Part shown: piece after piece, positions 5-61,900 of the stretch | How the letters are laid out: the number at the start of each line of letters is the position of its first letter | Position numbering within the stretch: position 1 is the first letter of the stretch | Notes under the pieces: model-generated | Told to the model about the DNA's origin: nothing | Database searches by the model: none | The model's input: only the letters and a program-made list of their open reading frames with translations | Assembly (NCBI GenBank): GCA_029953675.1 | Contig: JAMWBK010000001.1 | Span: forward strand, 3,162,001-3,226,000 | From: Rhodosorus marinus CCMP1338 | Lineage: Eukaryota; Plantae; Rhodophyta | DNA length: 64,000 bases | Reading direction: 5' to 3' | Position numbers and translations under genes: made by a program

Positions 5-2077
5 GTGGAGGAGCTATTGGATACCCTGAGCAGCGCTCGGGTTTTCACAACGTTAGACCTTTGCTCGGGATATTGGCAGTTGCCAATTGAACAAGCATCA
101 CGCGAGAAGACGGCCTTTGTCACGTGCTTCGGACAATACCAATGGAATGTCATGCCGTTTGGGTTGAAGAATGTGCCCTCGGCATTCATCCGCTACTTGA
201 CGGACGTATTATATGATCTTCTCAACCAGTGCGTGGTGTTATACGTTGACGACATTCTGGTATATTCCCCAGAGGACATACAACACCAGGACGATGTTCG
301 AAAGGTGCTACGACGCCTCGAGCAGCATCAGTTGATCGTCAAATACTCGAAGTGCGGTTTTGGATTACGCCAAGTTTGCTACCTAGGCCAAATCTTGGCG
401 GGAGGCACTCGACGTCCCGATCCGGAGAAGGTCAAAGCAATTCAGAATTGGAGGACGCCACCGACGGTTAAGGAGCTACGGGCCTTCATGGGTTTCGCGA
501 ACTTCTTGCGCCCCTTTGTACCACACTTCGCCCAAGTGGCGGCGCCCCTCCACAGGCTAACGAAGAAGGACCAGAAGTGCGGTTGGCACGCGGACGAACA
601 ACAAGCCTTTGATGGGTTAAAATCCGCCATATCAGCAACCACCATGCTGTACATGGTTGATCCGATCCTCCCCTTCACCGTGCAGACGGACGCGAGCGAC
701 ACCGGGGTGGGTGCTATCCTATTCCAGACCCGCCAGGATCAGGAGGTGCCCGTGGCGTATATGTCCCGATCCTTCAATAGTACCGAGAAACGCTACAGTA
801 CGTACGATAAAGAACTCTATGCCATCGTCCTGGCCATCCGCAGGTGGTCCGTGTATCTTGATGGGCACCACCAGTCTCTAACGGCAGGCCATTTCGGCGA
901 ACAAGCTACTAACCGTGTGGTGCGACGACGCTATTACTGGCCTACCATGAGGAAAGACATTTTCACGCGCGTACAACAATGCGAGATATGCGCCCGTGAA
1001 CAACCGCTTCGGCGCAACCAGGGCGAGCTGCAACCGCTCGCAATTCCGGAGAATCGCGCGGTCGACTGGACTATGGACTTCATCACAGGCTTTCCCAGTA
1101 TCGCGGGTAATGACGCTATACTAGTTGCGGTCGATCGACTCACGAAGTACGCCGAATTTATCCCGACGACGAAAATGGTAACCGCGGAAGGAGTGGCAAC
1201 ACTTATCCTGCAACATATCGTCGCCTGGTTCGGATTGCCACGGAGTTTTGTCACAGATCGCGATCCAGTCTTCACGGCAAATTTTTGGCGCCACCTAATG
1301 AGACTAACCAGACACTTCAAATCATGCTGAGATGCTGCTCTACAAATCGCACGTGGGTGCAGAGCCTCCCGCTACTTCAGCTGGCGTATAACAATCATCC
1401 CTCAGCCAGCACGGGGTATTCACCATATTTCCTGTTAACAGGGGGGCATCCGCGGCTCCACTTGGATGTCTCACTACCTACCACGCAAATTGAGAACCTC
1501 CCCGATGCCGCTACTGCGTTCTCCCAACGACAACAGCGAATTCTTGCAGATGCACGCAAATCACTGACCCTGGCACAAGAATTATCTGCGGCATCCGCTA
1601 ATACCCACCGTCATGCGAAGGTGTTCCACGTCGGCGATTACGTCTATTTGTCAACGAAGAATCTCTCACTGGAGGGCCCAACCCCGCTTCCAACCTCGAT
1701 GGTTGGGCCCGTTTCCCGTGATCGAGAAACACTCTAACGTGGCATACACTCTGCAGTTACCGGATGAGATGCGCATACATTCGACATTTCACGTATCCTT
1801 GCTAAAAGGTGCCCCTACGTGTCCTCCGAATTCTCCGATGCGGATTATCCCTCTCCAATCGGATCTCTATTCAACGCTACCGATCCTGTCGGTATTGGGG
1901 GTCCGCCATGCGGCTAATGGGATCCGACAGTTCCTATGTTATCGCGAAAAGGAATCCTGGACTGATGCGACTTGGATACCCGAGCCGGACTACCCGACCG
2001 ATCTACAATCTCGACGACGCTTACGACACTACCTCAATTATCGCAAGGCGCTTGACGCGCTACCTTCAACTTCTTGA
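5..2077 (+). pseudogene. pol: Gypsy pol (RT-RNaseH-IN-chromodomain) broken into three frames
   Basis: ORFs 5..1330, 1285..1737 and 1613..2077 are consecutive parts of one pol, with frame changes near 1300 and 1685. Conserved segments are missing near 870 and 1300. Confidence 0.92.
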
Positions 2078-2093
2078 GTTCGTCCCCAAACTC

Positions 2094-2104
2094 GGCGGGA
2101 GGAT
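2094..2104 (+). other. Polypurine tract of the retrotransposon
   Basis: GGCGGGAGGAT lies immediately 5' of the LTR start TGTTAGAAC. Confidence 0.8.
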
Positions 2105-2331
2105 TGTTAGAACCTTGCCCTGACAGCTGCGTAATCTGTGTAAGACACTCCCTACTTTAGTGCAAGATCCCTACTTTAGTGTAAGACGCTAGTGTGCTAG
2201 TATCCAACAGTTTCTACTTTACTGTCAGGTACGTCTTAGTTTACAGTAACCAAGACTATATGAGACCTAGCTTTGCTAGATCTTGAGACCTAGAATTAAG
2301 TAAAGACAAGTTGGTTAGAAGAGTTCTAACA
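2105..2331 (+). repeat. 3' LTR (227 bp)
   Basis: Starts TGTTAGAAC and ends GTTCTAACA, a perfect 9-bp terminal inverted repeat with TG...CA ends. It directly follows the PPT and contains internal direct repeats CCCTACTTTAGTG x2 and TGAGACCTAG x2. Confidence 0.93.
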
Positions 2332-2881
2332 ATTCCAATGAAGGGTTGACAACTGTCGAACTGAAGTAGCGCTAAGTGGCTCAAAAAGTAGCCTCACCAG
2401 CTACGTCTTGAGTATGTTTTCCGAAACAAATTAGATTGTGTACGCGAAATGAGGACAAAGTTGGAAAGACTGAGGGTGCGTAATGAGGTGCTGGTGAGGT
2501 CGAACATATGTTGTTGTCCAGAGTTTGTTTGGCTGGTAGGTTGGACTGCGGAATTGGGGCTAGAGGTCCTTTCGAAGGGGTTTTGATTTGGGATGCACTA
2601 CTGGATTGGTACTCCCGAGATTTTTGCGGAGGGGGACTCATCGGGGTGAACAAGATAGGGTCGCATCTGAGTAGTTGGGACAACTTTTGACAGCCATCAG
2701 AGGCGACAAAATGGAAGACCAGATTAGCACGCTTTGATTATCTGTTGGAAATTCTAGGGTACTGCCTCGGAAAGCGAGCGAGCTCAGAGAAAAAATCTAC
2801 GGAGGTCGAAGCAGTGGTTCGGGCAAGAGGGAGCTGGTCTGACCGTCGCATTGTGGATACTGTCATTTCCCGGTTACCAAG

Positions 2882-4222
2882 ATGGAAGAGGATTTAACCC
2901 GTGAGGATGCGGCTCGGTTCTGCGGATGTGGTAGAGGGAAAAAAAAAAAGAATTTTCCGACGGAAAATGGGGATAACAATCGGTCCCCATTCGCGTCTAC
3001 CATCAGTCGGCAAGTTGGGATCAGGGACAAGGAGGACATGCCACCGCGGTGGCAACAGAAGCTCTATCTGAAGACTCATATGTTTCGGAGAACTCTTGGG
3101 CCTTTCCTTTTGCTAAACATAGCGTTGTACGTGGCGTGCCTCGGCTTGTTTATTTATTTCACTGTAAACATTGTGAACGACTACCTGGATCAGCAGGAGA
3201 ACCCAAGAACGGTTCTTTCCACGACAAACGAGCCTTTCCAGGACTTTCCCGGAATCCTCATCTGCAACAACAGTCCCAGCGTTGAGCTGACCCTGATCGC
3301 AGCCTATGTGTTCCCGCAAGCGGCCCTGGCGGACCCCGAGTTGAATCTTGGGTTGAATGAATTTACCCTGACGAGCCGGATGGTACCTGTGCAGATCAAC
3401 TGCCCTGGGGTGGACGAAAAGCCGACCTACTGTTACAAACTTACGGATAGTATTCCGGCTTATGGATTTCAGTCGGGGGATTCGGTTTGTCAGGGCCAGA
3501 ATGAGCTCTACTTCTATTTTGACATCAACCCCGACTTATATGACTCACGAACAAGTGCTCTAGGGGTTTCTGCGGTGCTTCACAACTCCGAAGTGATTGA
3601 GGGACTGGATTTTTGCGAACTTAATATATGCACAACCACCAAGGGTGCGGCTCAGGTGGACCCTTGCAACGCTTCAAACGAGCTGCTTGACCCTGGGTTT
3701 GATGTATTGTATGCTTCTGTTAACGTTGAAACTTTGGTAACTTTGCAGAAGTCGGTAACGGAGGATTTACTATCTTGTAGCAAAAGTTTCCTTCGTTGGA
3801 ACCCAGTTACAGTAGTTGCAGTTCCGAACCCAAAGTTTACAGCTGAGGTCTTAGGCGACGAAACGGCTACTAGGCGCCTAGTACAGCTGCGTGTTCGTTT
3901 CAGATCACCCTTCATTCAGACAACTCGATTTGAGAGCCAAAGTTTTGCATCAATGATCGGTAGCATGGCGGGTTGGTTTGGATTCCTCAGCGATGGTTGG
4001 GGAGTTATCAGTCTTCTCTTCATACTCGAAAAGCTTTACGTGCAGCTGACGAAGCACAAATGGCGCCGATGGACAGACAGAATGAATCCTAAGGGACTGG
4101 ACAACTCAGCTGCTCTAGAGGCGGAATATATCAACTACTCAGCCGCACCGAGTCAAGCGGTCCGGGTTTCTAATGATGATCAGTCACACAATACCAGTCT
4201 GGATGAGATAGACGATGCTTGA
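2882..4222 (+). CDS. DEG/ENaC (amiloride-sensitive sodium channel)-like two-TM ion channel subunit
   Basis: Single 446-aa ORF. TM1 (FLLLNIALYVACLGLFIYFTVNIV) is followed by YLDQQENPRTVLSTTNEPFQDFPGILICN, matching the Y..YP..T.....FPAVTICN signature. A Cys-containing ectodomain leads to LRVRFRSPFIQ...SFASMIGSMAGWFGFLSDGWGVISLLFILE, which resembles DEG/ENaC pre-TM2/TM2. The start could instead be the downstream Met (MPPRWQ). Confidence 0.75.
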   Translation: MEEDLTREDAARFCGCGRGKKKKNFPTENGDNNRSPFASTISRQVGIRDKEDMPPRWQQKLYLKTHMFRRTLGPFLLLNIALYVACLGLFIYFTVNIVNDYLDQQENPRTVLSTTNEPFQDFPGILICNNSPSVELTLIAAYVFPQAALADPELNLGLNEFTLTSRMVPVQINCPGVDEKPTYCYKLTDSIPAYGFQSGDSVCQGQNELYFYFDINPDLYDSRTSALGVSAVLHNSEVIEGLDFCELNICTTTKGAAQVDPCNASNELLDPGFDVLYASVNVETLVTLQKSVTEDLLSCSKSFLRWNPVTVVAVPNPKFTAEVLGDETATRRLVQLRVRFRSPFIQTTRFESQSFASMIGSMAGWFGFLSDGWGVISLLFILEKLYVQLTKHKWRRWTDRMNPKGLDNSAALEAEYINYSAAPSQAVRVSNDDQSHNTSLDEIDDA

Positions 4223-5095
4223 CCTCCCGGCAAAGTCGCAGTCAATGATCTTGCAAGACATAGAGATCTTCATTTCGATCTGCCATGGAAGCAGGAGACT
4301 CTTCTTCGGAGTTTGGAGATGTGAGTGCCGAATCACTCGAGAATGCGAGAATCCTCATGGCGTTGATAGGTTGAGTACGTGTGCCCTGTTGGCCATGCTT
4401 CCGGAGCTGGTGTGTAAATTCAGCGTAGGCAGAAGTAGATGTCTGCATCCACAACATTTGAGGATCTTTAAAATCGAAGACGATTTTTTTTCCTTATCCG
4501 GGAAAGCAGGACCCACGGTGCTTAGGGCTTTGTCGCTCCAAGAGACGATCGCAAAAACTTCTGCCTCTCGCAGTTGAAGCACCTGCTCGATAGGCACATC
4601 CACTACAAACTGACTTCTGACTAACGTAAACTGAACCTTCACTAGGGGTCTCGACAGCCACAGTTCGTCAGGTCCAAACGCATATCCTCCCAAACGCCGT
4701 AGCCTCTCCAACATGGCCGCATACCCAGCAAGCGTTCAGTCAATATTGACAGCACTTACTTAGAGCCAATCAATATACCATTGTTCATGATACATTGAGA
4801 ATCAGCGTTTTCTCATTTTTTTCGGCAGGTGGGGTATGTTGCCCAGCTTCGGGGGGGGGTAGTTAGCGTCGATTTAGAGGTAAAAACCGACAGACGGGGC
4901 TGAATCCTCGAAACTGAAGTCGTTTTCTGCGTTTTTCACGAATCAGTCGCAGTTTCTGAACTAAGAGCCAAAGGGTGTGTGTGTATATGATATATGTAGT
5001 ATGTTATTACCTTGCTGGTTGTAGGGATGGTCATGCGTGTACGTGGCTTTATCGTTGAAAGGATGTAAGGGACAGGGCTGGTTGAGTTTGCGACT

Positions 5096-6355
5096 ATGGC
5101 AGGGAGACACATATCTGTTATCTCCCCGTATATTCAATGGGATTCTCTGCCATTGAATTGGCTGTTGTTCCGGTCGGAGAGGCAGGATGTCCCGACTCCT
5201 AAGTCGAGGGGGGTTTTGTTGTTTAACGTTACTTTTGAAATCCCGGAGATGACCGCTTTCGTACTAGCAAACAGCGATCAAAAAGCGAAGCGTCTGTCCA
5301 TATTCTCTCAACCTTGTTTACTGATGACCGAGCTCGTCGCTGAGGACTACGCGATAGGGTCCGGATATGCCTTCCTTGGGGGTCTGCCGGAACTGGAAGG
5401 AAGGGAAAACAGCGCGTTTGCAGGCTTTGGCAGGATTCGGTTCTTGACTTACTGCGAAGATGGCAGAGTCGTATCAATTGTAACTAGCGAGCTGGGGCCT
5501 GGAGTTATTGGCTTCTCGAGAGCCAGAGAGTTGGATGGAAGGCATAACGAGACCACTCTGGGGCTTCTTGATCCTGCAAGTGAGACAATAGATTACACGC
5601 GCACGACTACGGATGAGCGAATCTGTCAGTCCTGCTACGAAACTAAGGCCAGCTGCGCCCCAGAAACCTGCAGGAACGCGCAGATATATGACGAGAAGCG
5701 GAGCATGCGCTTGGCTATGGTCGCGCGATCGGAGCTCTCCGTTGCGACCTTGGAGTATACTCTATCGTGGATTGAAGGAATGTGGACGCTTCCGATGGGG
5801 CCCTTGGAGCCAATTATTTGCAAAGCCACGTGCTATTCGTCAGGAATATTGTTTGAGAACTCGCTGAAGGCTGTGCTACAGAATGAGGTCGCATCTGTTC
5901 ACCCTCCTAGGTCTTCGTTCAGGTTTGTGAAGCTAGCACTGGAGGAGATTGACCAGATCCTGAGTTTGGCGGACGAGGGGGGTCCGACAACAACATCATC
6001 GTTTGAGGGGAAGACCTCCAGCGTTACTGATAGTACCGGGTCTGTCGCAACGTCCTCGAAGAAGAATGCCATGTATGCTTGTCCGGATTGTGCAACATCT
6101 TTTCGGAGGAAGTATGACCTAAAAACGCATCGTGCCTCTGTGCACGAGAAGAGACGTAACTACAAATGCCCGCAGTGTCCAAAGACGTTTACTCAGAACG
6201 GTCACATGAACATGCACATAAGAGTGGAACACACTGGGGACAAACAGCACGCGTGTCCTTACTGCAAGAAGAACTTTCCCATCAAATCAAAGCTTGTTCG
6301 ACACGTTTTAGGGGTGCATGAAAATAATCAACTTTCCAAGGCAGCTGTGCAATAG
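5096..6355 (+). CDS. C2H2 zinc-finger protein (three C-terminal fingers)
   Basis: Fingers CPDC..F....L..H...H, CPQC..F....H...H and CPYC..F....L..H...H sit at the C-terminus of a 419-aa ORF. The start codon is uncertain. Confidence 0.88.
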   Translation: MAGRHISVISPYIQWDSLPLNWLLFRSERQDVPTPKSRGVLLFNVTFEIPEMTAFVLANSDQKAKRLSIFSQPCLLMTELVAEDYAIGSGYAFLGGLPELEGRENSAFAGFGRIRFLTYCEDGRVVSIVTSELGPGVIGFSRARELDGRHNETTLGLLDPASETIDYTRTTTDERICQSCYETKASCAPETCRNAQIYDEKRSMRLAMVARSELSVATLEYTLSWIEGMWTLPMGPLEPIICKATCYSSGILFENSLKAVLQNEVASVHPPRSSFRFVKLALEEIDQILSLADEGGPTTTSSFEGKTSSVTDSTGSVATSSKKNAMYACPDCATSFRRKYDLKTHRASVHEKRRNYKCPQCPKTFTQNGHMNMHIRVEHTGDKQHACPYCKKNFPIKSKLVRHVLGVHENNQLSKAAVQ

Positions 6356-8945
6356 GAGTTACAAGACGAAACGTAAATGGGAAAGCACATGTACGAGGTG
6401 GGGATGCACGACACGAATATTGATGACATGGCCAAGATTGAAGCAAAATCGCAAACAGCGCTGGAGCAGTGTTGACGAAGAGTAAACAAAGCACAAAAAA
6501 AATTGCCCCTGAGGTGATTAATGGCATACCCTATCGACCGACACGATCAAGCGGAAGATGGGAGAAAGCATCTTGAGTGCAGGGGATGAGCTTTTTTTTT
6601 TCCCTGGAAATGGGGACTGCTTGATGGTTTGCCATTGGCACTGCTCTGCGTTCGGTCGACGATGTCTACCTCCGTGACCGTCGTCAAATCAACAGCGCAG
6701 ATGCCGTGGGAACATCTGGTTGATGGCGATTTGGTATAGATGAGCAACCTACCTCTCTGGGTCCGTTGCCATACTTCTGGCCCAAGACAAAGTGACGACA
6801 AGACAGACTGAGACTGGCGAGAACGAAGCACTGCATTTTTCCCAAGAGCAGTGGATGAGCCAGAGAGGATATTATGGGTGACTCCAGAGCTCCGCTGTGA
6901 GTAAAGTCAGACTGGCAGTATCTATGAGATAACTGTATTTTCCGCTGAGCAGTTGCCCAGCGTAGTGCACCTCGAATCCAAGACCTCGCTTATCTTCACC
7001 AAGGCTGGAGTTATTCTTGGAAGGAAAGTTCAACAAACATGTCACCCTGCACACGGTAACACGAAGGTAGAGAATACCTGTGCGGATTGACTCAATGGAA
7101 CTGATGCGAAAGCTTGACGGGGTTTTGTCCGTTTCGTAACATCGCGAACTCGAATAATGAGGCCGGAACGCGGATACTTTCATCGAGGACTGGTGAGTTA
7201 CTGAAGACTTACGCATGACCTTGGAGGATCAGTGATTAAAGATCACAAGCCAAGACGGCATCAGTCACTCTTACTAGTGATGAAACCACGCGTCCCACGT
7301 TACAATAAACGGATGTGGCGGGGTCGAGAGGCGATTGCCTCTATTCCAGAAAAAGTTTTCCACATCCTCAAGAGACCTTAAGCTCCTTCCCATGACAGTT
7401 TCCGTACTAGTACTGCGTCCTTCAGCAAAGCTGCTTTTCTCGTAGGGAAGAGAAGCCCAAGCCAAGGTGCTTTGGGACGTTACTACGAGGCTCCCACATA
7501 GACTCACGAATATGCTCCGCAGGACGTTTAGCATGTTGTGAAAGCCGTGTGACGGACTGCATGAGCTCCTGCTTCGCATTATCGAGTAAGCGATGCGGAA
7601 GCCCTCCGCGCGGCTGAGTTGCCACTAACGTCTTAAAAAGCGCGTCGCCAAACATCAATGAGATTGAAGGCGTTTCTTCGGTGGATGCTCGGCCGTGGAG
7701 AGGTCGTGTCCTGGAGCCGAGATCTGGGCCACCAGCCTAGCTTTTCAAAGTGTAGAGGAGTTGGGGGTGGGTTGCGTCGGATTCATGTGGAAAGGCAATC
7801 ATGCTCGAACATTGAACTTTGGGCAGCTGATCCGGTTTTTTGGGTAGTTGCGAGTGCGTGGATGGGAAGAGCTCGCTTCTGCCGCGAGGTCTTCGTGATG
7901 TCGGATCGTTGAGCTCGCGGAAGTTGTGATTGTGTCGAGCGGAGTCATATCCGGCGTTTGGCTGAAAAAGCTTCGAGGACAATTGGTTGAGGTGAGATTT
8001 AAATATCCGATCCGCGAACATTGTTGATCACGAGATTCTTTTGCAGAAAACCCAAAAGTGCATTTTTGCCGTGGCCTGTCGATCCTAACGAATTTTCGTG
8101 AGATGTATCCCGGCTCGCCACCTTTCCTTCTTGCACGACAGCAAAACCAAGCACGAGGTTCATCAAGAAACGCCCACGACCGTCTTTGGACGCAATTTTG
8201 GACAGTTTCATACGACTTGAACCTCGACAAATTACATAGTTTTACACTATTTTCATGCTTGAATGTCAAGTTTAACAAACGTATGTTCTGATCCGCTGGT
8301 GTTTATCGCAAACTGCTCACTAACACTCGCTGTACATGCTTCCTCAGGTTGCCAGATCTTTCGTACTAGAATCGCGCAACGGATAGAACCAGGTAAAACC
8401 CAAGGAGGGATGTTTCAGAGCGCACTCCAACCCTTGGGCCAACTGTCCCAACACTTTCAAACGTGGATCGCGCGATAGGCCATGAATCGACCCCTTCATG
8501 TCCTTGTCAAGTTGACATGTGATAGCTGGGGACGACACTTTGGCAAATAAGGTCGCCCGCATACCAAGGTCGTGTTGTGGATCCAAAGGTTTTGCCGTTG
8601 GAAAGAGAAATTCGCCGGTCTGACCTGGCATGGATCTACATTAGTGTCCTGGAAATCCGTGGGCAGTGCCAAAGTTTCGGGTCCGGACTGGCTCTGCTGA
8701 AGTGTGTGTGACACTAGTTCAACCTAATCTACCCCGCTGAACCCCAATCTTGGAAAGTTTATTCCTCGAGAACAGAAGAGGCCGATTTTGCGTCAAGGCG
8801 TGCTCTCCTTCTATGAGGAACTTGTGAGTCGCGCTGCGGCACCAGAAAACGTCAACAAGTTGTTCTGTATTTTATTGGAGCGATCTCCGCTAAGGCTGCT
8901 TGCGAGCGGATGAAGGCCGTGAGTGCCTGGGCATCGGGTGGAAAC

Positions 8946-22570: not shown

Positions 22571-24142
22571 TCAGACAAGGTTCCAACCCCTCGGTGGCGT
22601 CACGTACTGCCTCTTGGCCTGGACGCTAGCAAACCGATTCTCAGGAAGAATTAACGCTGTCAGACGGCCTCCATATACGCAGCCTGTATCTACGCCACAT
22701 GCGTACGGATGCTGCTGCAGGCCTCTAAACGCGTCGTGCCCGAACACAACAGTCTCGGGTCCAGGCCACAACCGAGCCCACTCTTTGGTCGGGACGTGCT
22801 TCGCCGTCACTGTCCCATCCACCAACACAGACCGCATATTCATCATCAACCTAGGATTCTGCTGGGACAACCTAGTGCCAGGAATGAAACCCGCATGGAC
22901 GAAAAGTACGCCAAGGTCTGGGGCGGATATAAACCAAGGGCAGGCGCGAAGCCACTCCTGATCCTCCGGAGAAAGAGCTCTCGCAATTCTGTAGTGTTCC
23001 AGTGACACCAAAGGCGGCCGCTCTCCGCGGTTTACTGCCTCCCTCCATTTGACAACTAAGACCACCCAAACGAAATCATTCGCACGAGTAGGTCAGTAGA
23101 CGCGAGCAAAGAAAAAGCCCCCCTTCTCTCGTACTACCTCAGAATACTCACCTTCATGATCATGGTTTCCCCGGACAGATTTCGCGTTGATTTCCCTGGC
23201 GAGTTGCACTACGGATACAGAGTCTGGCCCCTTCGCGACGAGGTCGCCTAGAAAGATAACTTGGTCACCAGGTCTATAACCGACGACTCTCATGAGCTCC
23301 TGCAGTTCATCGATACATCCGTGGACGTCTCCAATGGCGATAACTCGTGGCTCCTTGTCAGCGCTCCTGCGAGAAGCACCTGCGTTCAGAAGCCTCGTAA
23401 ATCGCCCTGCTTCTTTGTCAGAGCTTGCTCTTCGGTTCGGTCTGTGAATGGTTTGATCGCTCTCAGTTCTAACTGGGCGTCGGTCGCTGTCAAAGGTGAG
23501 GACATCCCTCGATGTTCTGCGGAGCAGGCCCCATGAATGAGCCGTTTCATACCACTGTCGGAGCGTTCCGGTAACGCGCGGGTTCGAACAATTGAAGGAG
23601 TGCCTGGAGCCGGGTAGGACGTAACCAAAGTTGATCTCGAGAAACCGCTGGGGTGGGTCGGAAGACCTGCGGGGAGTGGTGAGGTTGTACATTTCTCCAA
23701 CACCTCCCGCTTCAACGTAGAATGCATACAGTGCCTCCTCCCTCTGCAGAAAGCTCGCCTGCGAGGTGGAGCCAGGTTCTACTGGGGCGGAGACCTTCGC
23801 GTTCGACCTACGTAGACTGAGCGGCAGCGAATTCTGGAGTAGGGTGTCCTTTTCGTTCTTCGTTTTTCTCCGAAAGGAGCTCACGGTCACCCTCCTCGTC
23901 AAGACCAGCGGTGGACGCTCAGAAAACGGATCATCCACTCCTCCATTCGGACCGCTGCCTCCGTTCAAGGCAACCAGTCCAGGATTATCAGCTCCGATAA
24001 CTTGCTCCAAATCAATCCCATTCTCTCCTCCTTGCTCGCTTATCCTCCCACTCTCCTCACACATACACAGAGCCGTCCTCCTCCTCCTCCGCACAGTACT
24101 ACCACCGCCCCTCCCAACATACAATCCTTGAACAAAACCCAT
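22571..24142 (-). CDS. ApaH-like phosphatase (calcineurin-like metallophosphoesterase), probably plastid-targeted, 2 exons
   Basis: Motifs IGDVHG, LGDLVAKGP, VRGNHD, VHAG, FGHD and DTGCVYGGRLTA. The long N-terminal extension starts MGFVQGLYVG. Confidence 0.9.
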
Positions 24143-55906: not shown

Positions 55907-58900
55907 TCACTCGTTGCCCTCGTCTGTGGCCTCTCCTTCCGTCTCGGATTCAGTGTAATCGGCGTTCCCGTCAGTGTCCGCTTCCGCTTCCGCCTCCTCC
56001 CCATCTGCAACCTCGTCGACTCCTGCCTCTTCGACAGGTTCTGGTTCTGGTTCTGGTTTGGGCTCAACATAGTCCGAATCCATAACCTCCTCAAGGTCCT
56101 TGAGATGTTCTGCTCCCATCGCACTTGCAGCCATCTGTCTAGTGTTCTCATCGTGGGAGCGATAGCAAAGAACCATGGAGTACACGCCTTCACACCTCGA
56201 GACAATATTCGGACTTGACCTACATAGAAACGTAGAGAACGACGCTTGAGCAAGGAGTACTCGGGAATACAAAGCATGAAGGGATTTTCTGGCAAAACCC
56301 AGAGGGTTCTATTCCAGGCGTGCACGAGAAGCACCCACCGTTGCATAACCTCGTCGAGTTTCTGCCTACACAGGTCTCCCAAGGATCCTCTGCTTGTCAA
56401 GGCAAACATAGCAATCCTAGCCCATAGAGCTCCCAACGCCTTGGGACTGGATTCTGGTTTCGGGTCGTTCAATCGGTCGATGGCAGCTGTTATCAACTTA
56501 TCATTCTGCAGCAGCTGGTAAACTATGTTAGGGTCTGCACCGGCAATGGCGCGTTGAACTCCTGCAAGACATCCACAGCAAAGCGGTTCAGGAATTTGTC
56601 GGTTGGTCGCTCCGCTGGGAATAGAGGTTCTTGAATACTATCAGTACCGTCGAAGATCCGGTCGAGGCATTTCGTTTCCCGTGGGCCTCCAGCCGAGGCC
56701 TCATATCCCTGCCACGCAATGCCTAGTGAAAGTTGTGCCGATGCGAGGTCTCCAGTCTTCGTAAACTTCCTCACAGACGCGATTGCTTTCACCGTAACCA
56801 GTTCATCTAGGTCACGCCCGACCTCTGTAAAGAACACAATAAAACCAAATTGCAACGCACGTAATGAGACAGTTAGCTCTGGCTCCTTTTTTCCCGCTGA
56901 CGCGAATCGTTAATGCGGCGCTGCTTACCGGCACACAGCCCGAGACTGGTGGACACCAGCGAGATCAGCTCTTCCCCAAGCTCCGCCTTAACCGGGTTTG
57001 TACTCTCCAGCAAGCCAAAGACGGCGTAGAGAGCTGCATACGCGTATCTGGCCAAAGGGGTGGTGGAGTAGTCTACAAAATAGTAGATCGGACATTGACG
57101 GTGCGACGTTGAGCACACTCGTATCGCTCATGAGATCATGACAATGCTTTCTTTTTCAAGCATACCGTTGGAGCTCACTTCGAGCTTTGCAGACAACCAT
57201 TTCGCAGCCTGCTTGATCGCCTCCGGTGCGCTTTTAGCCCTCCTCAGTATCGAAACGCAGTTCACGAAGTCTTTGTGAGGTGGCAGGTCCGGCAGCTTCA
57301 GCGATGGCTGCTCCCCACCCACCAATCCGCGCAAACTGTTTGCGGACGACTCATCGTGAAGGGCTACCGCTTGAAGCACCTCTTCTAGAAGTGGGGCCGG
57401 TATTTTCCTTGCAATACGTTTCAGAGAAAAACCGAGGGCCGAAACGCACTGGTTGTACATACGTTTCTGGATGAAGACAGGGACAAGAGCTGGTTTTCTT
57501 AGTCTGCTTTTTCCAAACAGATGTTTGTCATGTGGCGGGGGTCCGTACCTCTTCCTCGGTTTTCTTCGAGCGCGAGAGGCAGACACGTAGCCAAAAAACG
57601 GTCGTTGCCGTAAGTATCACCGTAGGATTTTGCGATCGGGACAAATGCACGCCAGGTGCGTTTGAATTAAACCACTCCACAGATTGCAGCAAAGTATCAG
57701 CGATGTCGAATTCCAGAGACTTGTGCGAGTATATCAGCAGAGACGAGAAGAGCAAGGCTGGCGCGTATTCATTAAACAGCTCCTCCGTAGAGGTTTCAAA
57801 AGCAGTTGAAGCAATTGCGGATCCAAACGGTTTCAGCTCCCTCCCCTTATCAACTGCAATCGTCGCAAAGTCTCCACAAACGCCAGCAAAGATTCCTGAC
57901 AGGACATGCACTCAATTCAGCACCCTCGAAAACGCACATCGAACGTCCGGCACCACGAAGTACAGGGCAACTTACTGAACAATACTCCAACTCTGGATCG
58001 GATTTTTTTGACGAACTGGTCCTTTCCTGATACTGTGGCTAACCAAACAGTATCCGCGAGAGCCTTCACAGCTCCAAACGATGCTGCAGTGCTGAAATGC
58101 TCGGCAATGTTGTCATACTGGAAGCCCAAGTGAAATCCGGCCAAGTCCTTGCTGAAAACCGACCTCACCAGTCCATCTTCGAAGAGCTCAGTCCCGGAGG
58201 TTGTTGTGAGGATTGAGCCAGTTGCGGATATTGCCGTTGTCAGAACGTCCGGGTGCAGTGATGACCTGAGGAGCCCTGCAATATTACAAGAAGACAAACA
58301 CCGCAAAAATGATAAGATTATGGTTGAGAGCTTTTCCTGATTATTCCACAGGGTTGAACAGCGGCACGAAGGGTCTTGGATCACATTCCGCACGCAACGG
58401 CAAGAATGAGAGCTTACTCCGTAGTACGCGGCTGAGCCTTCCAGAAGGGAATTCATCTACAAAGGAAATCCGGTTAATACCGAGCTTAACAATCTTATCC
58501 AGAATCTGTAGTCCCTGTGTAATAGTGACAATGTTTCTGTTTTCGCCGGAAATCGCGTCCATGGAAAAGTACAATAGATCCTTGAGAGAGGAGTACACGT
58601 TTCGGTGACTCGCAGGGGTTTTCTTTTTCCCCTTCACTAGCTGAGCAGGGTCCTTCGGGAATGAAAAAAGGGAACACAAAGGGGGATCAGTGACCACCGG
58701 TAGCAGAGCTAGATGCTTGTTCTTAACAAACTATGGTATGGAGTTACCTTCTCTGCCGCATCCAACGCAACTCGAGCAATGTAGACAGCCATCCCCCTCG
58801 TGAGAGTTTTCGCATCCCACTCTTCACCGTACAAGTTCTTCCCTGCGTCCTCCATCAACTTGCCAATAACCACCTTGATCCCATACCGTGAGATGTTCGA

Positions 58901-61900
58901 CTCCCATCGCTGGTTGATCTCAATATCTTGCATCCGCGGACCGCCGTTGGAGATGTTCTTGGTTATGTTGAGCCAAAACCCGAATCGTCGCGGAGCATCG
59001 ACACGAGCCAGTGCAAGAAGAATAGGAACCGCCGTCATGCAACCATTGTCAAAGGCAACAAAAAGCATCTCTGGAAGATCTTGAAATGCGCCTATTGTTC
59101 TCTCTGCTCCGACCGCATGTAGCAAAGAGACGAGGGCAGATGTGGCAGCCTCGCGAACCATGTTGTACTTTGCCTCCGGCGGGCATATGAGTGACTCGTA
59201 TATTGCCCAGCCGATCTTTTTAGCTGACGACGCCGAGGACCACAAGTCGGACAGGTGCAGGGGTCTACCTTGTCGAAGAGCTTCTTGATATTTCTGCTTC
59301 CAAATGGCGCTGAGCAAACTCAAGCCCGTTGCCCTCGTGACCGCAGACGGTAGGAGATCCCAGGATACGAGCTCCAGAGCAATCTCCTCCGCGACTGTGA
59401 GAACGCTCGGGTGCGCTTGCAGCGCCTGAGCACTGAACGAGTTCACTATTCCCTCGGCCCCGAACCCAAACGCTGCCACGTCCCCGCAGTTCTCGATAAC
59501 AGCCCTCGTATCCGCCAGATGAGATTCAGGCACGTACAGATTGGAAGAGAAGTCCCAGTCGCGTTCTCCTTTCTCGTTCGCCATCGCGGTAGCCATGGCG
59601 TTCATTAGGGTGTTCGCCCGCTTAGCAATGTACTTGGACGTGCATGCGGGACCCACAGACAGAGCTGCTGAAACACTGGTTCTATCATCTTTTCCAGTCA
59701 AAGCATCCTCAATCACAAAAACTGCCTTCTCCGCCAGCTCAGCATCCACCTGAACAGCACCTTGAAGTAGCTTGCCCATGAGGTACACACTTGCAACAGA
59801 ATATTCCGGGTACTTCTCATGAAGGCTGTAAGCGTTCTGGAGGAGGCCCGTTAGAAACGAGTCCCCACAGCGCTTTCCAAGCTCATGATAGGCTTCCGCA
59901 ATTACCGCAAACGCCGACGTGTTCAGAATCGAGAGTCTGTCATTGTCCCGATCGTAGATATCCGCTGGGTGTATGGAGAATGCTGCTGACGTTGTGAGAG
60001 CAGTCTTCTGCAGAAGCGCCTGCAAATGCGCCAGAAGATTTCCGTGCCTTGCAAGGGTTGCCTTGTCCAATTGAGAAGTCATCGACCGGCAAACGTAGGA
60101 CGAGAACGTTGTTGAGAAACTGGAAGGGTTGGACGCAACGGTTTCTACAACCGCAACACCGTAGCGAGAATCCACACTCGCTAAAGACGCAATCGCGTTC
60201 GAGGCAACCATCAACGTTTCTGCGCTGATGGTAATCGTCTCTGGAGTGTTGAATGCGTCCACGTGAAGCAATGGAAGAAGTTGGTCGTAGAGGGGCTTCT
60301 GCAGTAGGTCATCCCGTAGCTTGGCCGTCCCTATGTCGCTAACCTGGTACTGCATACCAAACGCGACGTTGACAGCCAGGTGAAAGCAAGCGTCCCCGGC
60401 CCGTCCGGTTGGCGGATGGACCGCAATTGCCCGAAGGAGCCACCAGACCTCTAAACTCCATATATACTTTTCCACATACTTTGCAATGTCATTGGAAAGA
60501 CGTTCTGCCGCGTAGCTGGCGGCAAGGCCAAGGATTAGCCTCTTCTCTGCGTCTGAAATATGAGGCCTGCAAGAAAACACGAAAACCAAAGTAAACATTT
60601 AGATTAGTTACCCAATACCTGAAGGCCTTGGTTGGAAGAACAAGGCGCACATTTTCTTCGCCAAAATTTGGTACAGTGCGGATGTCGCCGCTGCTCGGGC
60701 AGTACTGCGGTGGTCGGTTACAGACGCTACAGTCGAGGAAACATGGCCGACCTTCACAATGCCGGTTCTGGAGGTGGTATAGCCGGTGAAACCAGGATCC
60801 TTTGTAACCATTTCAAATCGTCTCTGAATTCGCAGCAAGTCGAAACTATCTTCGAAAATGTCAAATGTTTCCTCTTCATAGACCTTATCCCTTCTCCCCG
60901 AGCGACTCGATCCGCGGCTGAAAAAGTTCGACATACGGCTGCTACGCCTGCTAGATCGGGAGCTGGTGCTACTGCGACCGCTACTGCGCCTAGATCCTGA
61001 GGAACTTCTGCTAGAGCTTCTTCCAAGAGATGATGTCGCTCTTCCAGAGGAGCGGCCGGAAACCGATTTCGAGGCCGAACGACGCCCGAGCGAGAACTTT
61101 GAAGAACGAGAGGATCGAGAGCTCTCCACATTTGTCTGCGAAATCATTCCATCTTCGGACGTCTTCTTCGGTACCTTCTTTGGCAGGCTCATCGTATCCA
61201 AGTTCTTTGCTAGCCTCGTGTTGGCAGCTGCATCCGCCGACCGCGAAAACGTCCGCGCGTCATCGTTTTCACCGCCAATGCCCACTCCGGTCACTTCGCC
61301 AGCGTCCTTCCGGTACTTTCTGATCTCCTCTTTCGCAGCGAGATCCCCATATTCTAATCTCCAAAGGGCAATCAAGGTACCGACACGAGCCGGGGAGAAG
61401 AACTGGGGAACATCAAATCTGAGCAAAGCCGCAAGGAGTGACCATCCGCACCGGCGACAAACGTTCTGGATCATCTCCCCGTGCTTGTCTTTCGAGGTAC
61501 TCAAACCGGTGATCAACGAGAATCCGATCTCACCAAGCCTCTCAACGACATCAAAAGGGAGGCCAAGCGACCCGTTCGCTCCGTCGATCAGGCCTACCAA
61601 AGCCGTGGTACAGCCAAGGACCGTGTATAGTCCCGTTGGCGCTCCGGATTCTCCTAACAAGCGTTCAACACGGAGTTAGCGGATCATCGTAAAACCCGTT
61701 CAACACGGAGTTAGGAGATCATCGTAAAACCCTGCTCAACTGGGCTTTCGAGATTGTCTCATACCTAGAGATGCTTCAGTTGCAATTTCAATCACAGCTA
61801 CACGAAGGCGTTCAACGGCTTTGGTGACAACCACTTCCCTCTTCATCGGTACGGCTGCACCCACAAGCGAGAGAAACTATACAGCATAGCACAGAGACAT

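Follow-up and report, generated by a model that had tools for sequence, protein, structure and literature searches.

A two-transmembrane protein of the red alga Rhodosorus marinus as a candidate member of a third family within the PAC/DEG-ENaC fold class

PAC (also TMEM206, PACC1 or ASOR; PF15122) is a proton-activated anion channel, and a lysine in the pore, situated in the second transmembrane helix (TM2), sets its anion selectivity. Channels of the DEG/ENaC/ASIC type are trimeric, amiloride-sensitive and Na+-preferring. Their ectodomain, built on a palm/beta-ball core, carries a helical finger, thumb and knuckle and many conserved Cys residues, and TM2 of ASIC is discontinuous and carries the GAS belt. 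P2X receptors occur in algae and protists. The gene considered here is located at positions 2882..4222 (+) of a 64,000-nucleotide stretch of DNA from Rhodosorus marinus CCMP1338 (contig JAMWBK010000001.1, positions 3,162,001 to 3,226,000), which is referred to as the window. From its sequence, the gene product had been proposed to be a minimal, non-animal member of the DEG/ENaC superfamily (the original prediction). The analyses described below make it very probable that the protein is a channel of the PAC/DEG-ENaC fold class. On balance, and by a modest degree of confidence, we favour the view that it belongs to a third family of this fold, forming a homotrimeric, cation-preferring channel gated from outside.

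PAC and ASIC/ENaC have been described as being without 'discernible amino acid sequence homology' (PMC7904269). The two groups are treated as unrelated in sequence, and their resemblance has been called 'structural convergence' in one paper. Outside animals, Deg/ENaC channels have been reported only from Cafeteria roenbergensis and Tunicaraptor unikontum. These proteins lie inside ASIC/ENaC sequence space and are detectable by BLAST; the BLASTp survey for Deg/ENaC covered Rhodophyta and Chloroplastida, and no candidates were reported from either group (PMC10507113).

Sequence and structural links to PAC and ASIC

The window protein is not isolated but one member of an algal and labyrinthulomycete family. 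When 1.84 billion representatives were searched exhaustively with HMMER and a profile of the Rhodosorus sequences, 37 proteins were obtained at E<=1e-3, 21 of them at E<=1e-10, and the best remote homologue reached E=3e-36. By BLAST clustering two subgroups were distinguished, a Cys-rich subgroup (8 Cys), to which the window protein belongs, and subgroup B (2-6 Cys).

Membership in DEG/ENaC should be indicated by the Pfam domain ASC (PF00858). It gave the only Pfam match of the window protein, but this match remained below threshold (16.7 bits, cut-off 23.6 bits, E=0.004) and is confined to aa 80-133. Among 28 family members, only four gave any ASC match, the best with E=0.003. Located on TM1 and the first strand, this weak match speaks for a true minimal DEG/ENaC as in the original prediction, which would be an amiloride-sensitive Na+ channel, and bona fide members in Cafeteria and Tunicaraptor do so as well (PMC10507113). 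The score under the gathering cut-off, the few members matched and the lack of red or green algal candidates in the BLASTp survey argue against it, and this alternative is regarded as rather improbable. For TMEM206 (PF15122), no match was obtained to the window protein at E<=10 or to the 28 members at E<=0.1, yet all 43 PAC fragments retrieved were recognised by this domain.

With the window protein alone, phmmer found no match in the PDB. The profile of the 28 family members was compared with 177,635 distinct PDB sequences. Twelve matches were obtained at E<10, and eleven of them are PAC or ASIC chains. Xenopus PAC was the best match (E=8e-8), other PAC chains ranged from 2e-5 to 4e-3, ASIC5 was found with E=3e-4, and the value for ASIC1 was not significant (E=1.1). 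The match to PAC consists of two collinear stretches, one comprising TM1 and the first strand, the other the strands before TM2. When the subgroups were used separately, the Cys-rich profile detected PAC only (E=1.9e-5), and the profile of subgroup B detected ASIC5 (E=3.3e-4) as well as PAC (E=3.3e-3), the latter over nearly the whole ectodomain. The ASIC5 match of subgroup B is again composed of two collinear stretches, 'vslevqvgeeldlPsillCn' on TSIEVQYVEKMEFPAVTFCN and 'lvvvelsfsdsrvlei.kqkpqsFSvfFGsLgGWlGllsDGWglLtllFlleKfl' on NLVKIEINYSDLNYKITQQQKAVSVSELLADLGGQLGLFC-GASLITIIEIIEYL. The second one includes TM2 and has an i-Evalue of 0.08. An alignment of the TM2 pattern to ASIC, as proposed originally, is in this way reproduced by HMMER for the sister subgroup, although weakly. 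A profile-profile comparison with hhalign, which covered the N-terminal part of PAC (exon-1 fragments), aligned the family from TM1 to the PG motif with E=2.7e-5 and a probability of 74%. Weak as it is, the sequence evidence for a link to PAC and ASIC is specific and collinear.

A structural model was calculated with AlphaFold2 from a 41-sequence alignment without templates. Its mean predicted local distance difference test (pLDDT) value is 77.6 and its predicted template modelling score (pTM) 0.67, with residues 70-400 mostly above 85 in pLDDT; with the three Rhodosorus sequences only, a pLDDT of 30 was obtained. The model consists of a long TM1 helix, about 14 strands and, in the ectodomain, short helices only. 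Two strands (333-340 and 344-351) lead into TM2, which is split at DGWG. Foldseek searches of the PDB with this model produced 95 matches at E<=1e-3, headed by 16 PAC/ASOR/TMEM206 chains (E from 7e-14, probability 1.0). Template modelling scores (TM-scores) normalised to PAC are 0.59-0.70 for resting-state chains, with 0.67-0.70 for the best matches. ASIC2a, ASIC1a and ASIC5 follow with E=4e-11 to 1e-8, a probability of 1.0 and TM-scores of about 0.4, the lower scores being due to the large extra domains carried by ASICs. The top 50 matches are all trimeric channels. PAC structures were released after the training cut-off of AlphaFold2, so that the compact PAC-like model does not represent template recall. 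The window protein is predicted with good confidence to have the beta-rich ectodomain and two-helix fold common to PAC and ASIC.

The predicted PAC/ASIC beta core also agrees with the fold anticipated originally, as opposed to that of P2X. A P2X-like ATP-gated channel would likewise have two transmembrane helices and a Cys-rich loop, and a ChoanoV1 P2X model was the top match in the viral structure library BFVD (E=2e-4). This candidate was rejected: the BFVD match has a TM-score of 0.17 with a root mean square deviation of 25 A, there was no P2X match in Pfam, and P2X was absent from the top 50 of the 95 Foldseek PDB matches. Together with animal contamination or a chance open reading frame (ORF), which are considered below, such an explanation is barely credible.

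PAC is the best match both by profile (1.9e-5 even for the subgroup of the window protein) and by structure, and protein size and the simple ectodomain also fit PAC. The family could accordingly represent an algal TMEM206 counterpart, a proton-activated anion channel working in responses to acid or volume changes or else in acidic endomembranes. We consider this unlikely. PF15122 matches none of the 28 members although all PAC fragments retrieved are recognised by it, TM2 could be aligned with ASIC5 and in no search with PAC, and two conserved acidic residues of TM2, Asp371 and Glu383, as well as the strongly acidic ectodomains argue for cations. The PAC matches, better by profile and structure than those to ASIC, count at the same time against a true DEG/ENaC. 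The term 'minimal DEG/ENaC' overstates the relationship: placement in the same fold superfamily held, membership in the DEG/ENaC family did not, and a separate family within the superfamily is supported.

Family signature, topology and proposed mechanism

Complete members of the family are 300-485 aa long and have one common architecture. A basic motif before TM1 is followed by TM1, D[YF]xxxxxNPPT, FPxxxxCN, a beta-rich loop and FGSLxGWFGxLSDGWGxxSxLFxxE[KR]. The net charge of every ectodomain is acidic, ranging from -8 to -27. Named sources are Rhodosorus among red algae, Tetraselmis striata and Chlamydomonas euryale among green algae and, among labyrinthulomycetes, Mucochytrium quahogii, in which two or more paralogues occur. 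The taxonomic spread rests on these four named taxa, all remaining members being derived from environmental assemblies. The Mucochytrium and Tetraselmis proteins belong to subgroup B. Within the Cys-rich subgroup, the window protein is 27-31% identical to the other members, which are environmental or without taxon label. A word-indexed homologue search with the family alignment added only one protein, P0029, to those from Rhodosorus, and a pattern scan of IMG/VR revealed no viral or giant-virus copies. No Pfam domain is precomputed and no informative name is given for any of the 37 members, and in non-exhaustive literature searches on algal TMEM206 or Deg/ENaC relatives no prior description was found. 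The family, present in red algae, green algae and labyrinthulomycetes, is unnamed in every source looked up.

P0029 is specified by positions 6001..7236 of L001, a 273-kb environmental contig with densely packed genes that are apparently free of introns. Neighbouring genes encode a leishmanolysin-like peptidase M8, a methylmalonyl-CoA mutase, an acyltransferase and DnaJ; its source is a compact heterotrophic eukaryote genome. In four proteins from metagenomes (P0009, P0011, P0014 and P0030), the family signature breaks off within TM2 and unrelated sequence follows. These look like gene calls entering introns or frameshifts, and some source organisms probably carry introns in the family gene, unlike Rhodosorus.

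In the window protein, all features are encoded on the + strand. The N-terminal region (aa 1-72, 2882..3097), predicted to be cytoplasmic, contains 16 K+R compared to 10 D+E and was modelled with low confidence. A CGCG motif with a polybasic run (aa 14-23, nt 2921..2950) precedes the pre-TM1 motif LYLKTHMFRRTLGP, and these N-terminal motifs are common to all three Rhodosorus sequences. The CGCG motif and polybasic run constitute a possible lipidation or membrane-binding site. TM1 (aa 73-97, GPFLLLNIALYVACLGLFIYFTVNI, 3098..3172) was delimited by hydropathy (Kyte-Doolittle >1.5), corresponds to a modelled helix from 76 to 106 with pLDDT >90 and aligns with TM1 of PAC in HMMER and hhalign. The extracellular domain (aa 98-352, 3173..3937) is almost all beta in the model and was matched to PAC and ASIC ectodomains by Foldseek. 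Hydropathy, the model and residue counts confirmed the two transmembrane helices and eight cysteines noted originally, but the ectodomain comprises about 255 rather than about 270 aa. It contains exactly eight Cys residues, at positions 128, 174, 184, 203, 245, 250, 262 and 299, as well as two N-x-S/T sites, and its net charge is -16.

Two segments adjacent to the membrane are of special relevance for the comparison with known channels. The motif FPGILICN, already recognised in the original prediction, is indeed present after TM1 (aa 122-129, 3245..3268) and aligns with FPAVTFCN of ASIC5 and APGIAL of PAC. Within the family its C128 is invariant and P123 invariant or nearly so. In front of TM2, the final pair of beta strands (aa 333-352, LVQLRVRFRSPFIQTTRFES, 3878..3937; modelled as 333-340 and 344-351) aligns with 'FVVFEWKDPYIQE' in PAC and with 'LVKIEINYSDLNYKIT' in ASIC5, which are likewise strands. 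The stretch LRVRF...SMIGSMAGWFGF, which extends into TM2, corresponds to aa 336-368.

TM2 (aa 355-389, 3944..4048) is the proposed pore-lining helix. It is Gly/Ser-rich, includes a conserved block rich in Gly and Trp, bears the signature FGSLxGWFGxLSDGWG...LFxxE[KR], is modelled as two helices (355-370 and 375-389) and aligns with LLADLGGQLGLFC-GASLITIIEIIEY of ASIC5 TM2. In the family alignment G360 is found in 27/27 sequences, G364 in 25/27, and W365 and G367 in 25/26 each. The break between the helices is predicted at SDGWG (aa 370-374, 3989..4003), where the model has a gap and 'sDGWg' is aligned to '-GAS' of ASIC; D371 is conserved in 21/24, G372 in 23/25, W373 in 22/25 and G374 in 21/25 members. 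At the inner end of TM2, Glu383-Lys384 (4028..4033) is aligned to 'EIIEY' of ASIC5, Glu383 taking the position of the second of the acidic residues in the lower pore of ASIC. The glutamate is present in 20/23 sequences and lysine or arginine at 384 in 19/23. Comparison of the window gene with L002, a 5-kb contig of R. marinus, by the Nei-Gojobori method revealed a ratio of non-synonymous to synonymous substitutions (dN/dS) of 0.35 overall, 0.36 in the ectodomain and 0.115 in the TM2 block. At the level of sequence, constraint within the protein is highest in TM2.

The C-terminal tail (aa 390-446, 4049..4219), also modelled with low confidence and putatively cytoplasmic, contains KHKWRRWTDR and closes with the acidic sequence SLDEIDDA; 6 K+R and 1 D+E are found in the first 20 aa behind TM2. 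Its motifs are conserved among the three Rhodosorus sequences. The Trp motif of the tail was also detected in subgroup B and in P0021, a fragment from Chlamydomonas euryale, and is absent from the other members of the Cys-rich subgroup, which are otherwise the closest to the window protein. Because basic residues flank both helices, in accordance with the positive-inside rule, and because the Cys residues and N-glycosylation sites are located in the loop, both termini are predicted to be cytoplasmic and the loop outside.

Taken together, these features point to a pore of the PAC/DEG-ENaC class, trimeric and gated by a ligand or by ions. According to the proposed mechanism, a homotrimer would reside in the plasma membrane, its N- and C-termini facing the cytoplasm, and the acidic ectodomain, braced by disulfides, would serve as sensor of an extracellular cue. 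The likeliest cue would be a change in protons or other ions of sea water, protons being placed first because both related families have proton-gated members; a proton or ionic stimulus is a plausible suggestion, but a tentative one. Upon sensing, the membrane-proximal strands (FPGILICN behind TM1 and LRVRF...TRFES ahead of TM2) would move, and the pore lined by TM2 would open. TM2 would be interrupted at SDGWG, at the position of the ASIC GAS belt, and the pore would contain a ring of Asp371 at the break and a ring of Glu383 at the inner end. From both rings and the uniformly acidic ectodomains a preference for cations over chloride is expected, and we lean slightly towards a cation-preferring pore.

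Several observations weigh against this mechanism. All functional statements on the family are inferred, and its closest relative, PAC, is an anion channel. Lysine or arginine beside Glu383 and the basic cluster after TM2 make anion selectivity possible; K/R384 and the KHKWRRW cluster could act as the selectivity lysine does in PAC, in favour of an algal PAC counterpart. The aligned filter reads G-W-G and not G-x-S, and a ring of Trp could result in a different pore geometry. The AlphaFold2 model is that of a monomer. In addition, the links in sequence to known channels are weak and lie mostly in TM1 and the first strand. A profile of TM2 only produced just chance matches in the PDB (E~0.7), and a profile of the ectodomain only nothing relevant, so that TM1 and the first strand, or a full-length profile, are needed to connect the family to PAC and ASIC.

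The fold could also be used without a channel role, for instance in a two-pass receptor, an adhesion protein or a regulatory subunit, with TM2 serving for packing only. The functional assignment of the family is an inference, a Gly-rich small-xxx-small pattern as in TM2 is also typical of helix packing, and the ectodomain evolves fairly fast. Yet exclusively trimeric channels were found among the top 50 PDB matches, constraint is strongest on TM2, and the retention of Asp and Glu within a membrane span is hard to explain without a pore. Such a non-channel role is regarded as very improbable, and a gated trimeric pore is retained as the preferred reading.

Conservation of the gene and its surroundings

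The gene is a complete intronless coding sequence of 446 codons for amino acids that starts with ATG and terminates at TGA; an in-frame stop lies upstream of the ORF at 2840. Two full-length proteins from R. marinus transcriptomes (MMETSP/EukProt), P0002 and P0003, are 79-80% identical to the window protein and match start and end of the 446-aa ORF; all length differences are in-frame. These two are its only close relatives in the word-indexed homologue search, and no paralogue of the gene was found elsewhere in the 64-kb window. Contig L002 is collinear with window positions 2533-7174 at 80-87% nucleotide identity, and the downstream gene, encoding a 419-aa C2H2 zinc-finger protein, is syntenic on both.

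The transcript orthologues at 79-80% identity, the dN/dS values and the remote homologues indicate that the ORF is more than a chance occurrence. Animal contamination was rejected since gene and neighbours are collinear with the R. marinus contig; the source contig of the gene is, moreover, 3.8 Mb long. A chance ORF was rejected on the basis of purifying selection and the distant homologues. The orthologues, the collinearity and dN/dS together exclude both. The ORF at 2882..4222 represents a nuclear gene that is expressed in a Rhodosorus-like red alga, and the algal origin of the original prediction could be substantiated.

The C2H2 protein is encoded at 5096..6355 (+) in the window and at 2496..3755 in L002, with matching position and orientation and with the zinc fingers in the C-terminal part. 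L002 is a 'transcriptome' contig but covers both genes and the spacer, which implies either read-through transcription or genomic DNA carried into the RNA library. Upstream of the channel-like gene, a degraded pol of the Ty3/gypsy type is located at 5..2123 (+) in three overlapping frames (5..1330, 1285..1737 and 1613..2077), with the domains RVT_1, RNase H, integrase zinc-binding and core, and SH3_Tf2-1. This remnant ends about 750 bp before the channel-like gene.

Further away, a 35-bp tandem repeat at 61662..61754 (2.2-2.6 copies, 80-90% match) adjoins the ORF 60608..61660 (-). This ORF and the neighbouring one of 629 aa, 58709..60598 (-), are without Pfam match. Partial domains were detected in other long ORFs, Metallophos in 23093..24190 (-), DAO (FAD oxidoreductase) in 26342..27160 (+), represented by its C-terminal part only, and EF-hand in 28381..29733 (-). 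The partial coverage suggests that these ORFs are single exons of spliced genes.

Comparison with known channels

The family described here matches both PAC and ASIC5 by profile and thereby bears on the origins of DEG/ENaC and PAC. It is conceivable, though doubtful, that the algal and protist family represents a sequence bridge and that PAC, DEG/ENaC and this family share one pre-animal ancestor, a channel with two transmembrane helices. If so, a small channel of this kind was already present in the common ancestor of Archaeplastida, stramenopiles and opisthokonts, its original form would have been much like the present pairing of a compact PAC-like ectodomain and a DEG/ENaC-like TM2, and the family would argue for divergence from a common ancestor over convergence. 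A family with the common PAC/ASIC fold would extend this channel architecture to Archaeplastida and would point to an uncharacterised route of ion sensing in marine algae. The small, intronless single gene could also serve as a model for how one scaffold gives rise to cation or anion selectivity and to proton gating.

Comparison with the described systems revealed a mixture of shared and divergent features. P2X receptors resemble the window protein in having two transmembrane helices and a Cys-rich extracellular loop, and they are trimeric as well. The fold of the ectodomain differs (TM-score 0.17), and there was no sequence match in Pfam or the PDB. The homologues of Cafeteria and Tunicaraptor are protist members of the same fold class and show that the superfamily reaches beyond animals. 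Unlike these, the algal family was not picked up by the BLASTp survey and is reached by profile or structure methods.

Resemblance to DEG/ENaC/ASIC channels extends over the topology, the FP(A/G)xxxCN motif behind TM1, beta12 and a TM2 rich in Gly (LGGxxGL / LxGWxGL), the closest solved member being ASIC5/BASIC (9mky, 9mkz). The break of TM2 at the GAS-belt position, the acidic residue of the lower pore and the beta core (Foldseek E=4e-11) are shared with ASIC. The FPGILICN/FPAVTFCN and beta12-TM2 alignments, including the GAS-belt position, the discontinuous TM2 of the model and the Foldseek probability of 1.0 to ASIC are also the best points for a true DEG/ENaC. However, the window protein lies below the Pfam ASC cut-off. 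The His-Gly (HG) gating motif that precedes TM1 in DEG/ENaC channels is missing from aa 1-72; the nearest sequence is T65-H66-M67, and subgroup B has TGFGR there. At the filter position G-W-G is found, preceded by a one-residue Asp insertion, where ASIC has G-A-S. Relative to the G/S-x-S filter of DEG/ENaC, the first Gly is kept in the algal family and Ser is replaced by Gly. The first lower-pore Glu of ASIC is Phe in the algal family. Shorter by about 110-170 aa, the ectodomain has no helical finger or thumb in the model, and the eight Cys residues contrast with the larger conserved Cys set of DEG/ENaC. From the failed ASC threshold and the lack of HG, of a strict GxS and of finger and thumb it follows that the protein is better not assigned to the DEG/ENaC family.

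PAC is the closest known relative by sequence profile (8e-8) as well as by structure (7e-14). Both have two transmembrane helices and a compact ectodomain, about 220-255 aa in length, that is nearly all beta with short helices only, and both share TM1, the stretch D[YF]-x6-P-x13-PG after TM1 and the strands before TM2. Unlike PAC, the algal family is without PF15122 match and its TM2 was not aligned with PAC in any of the searches. It has FPxxxxCN with an invariant Cys and up to four putative disulfides, and it keeps Asp and Glu in TM2. The window protein is therefore treated as belonging to neither DEG/ENaC nor PAC, but to a third family that shares their fold class.

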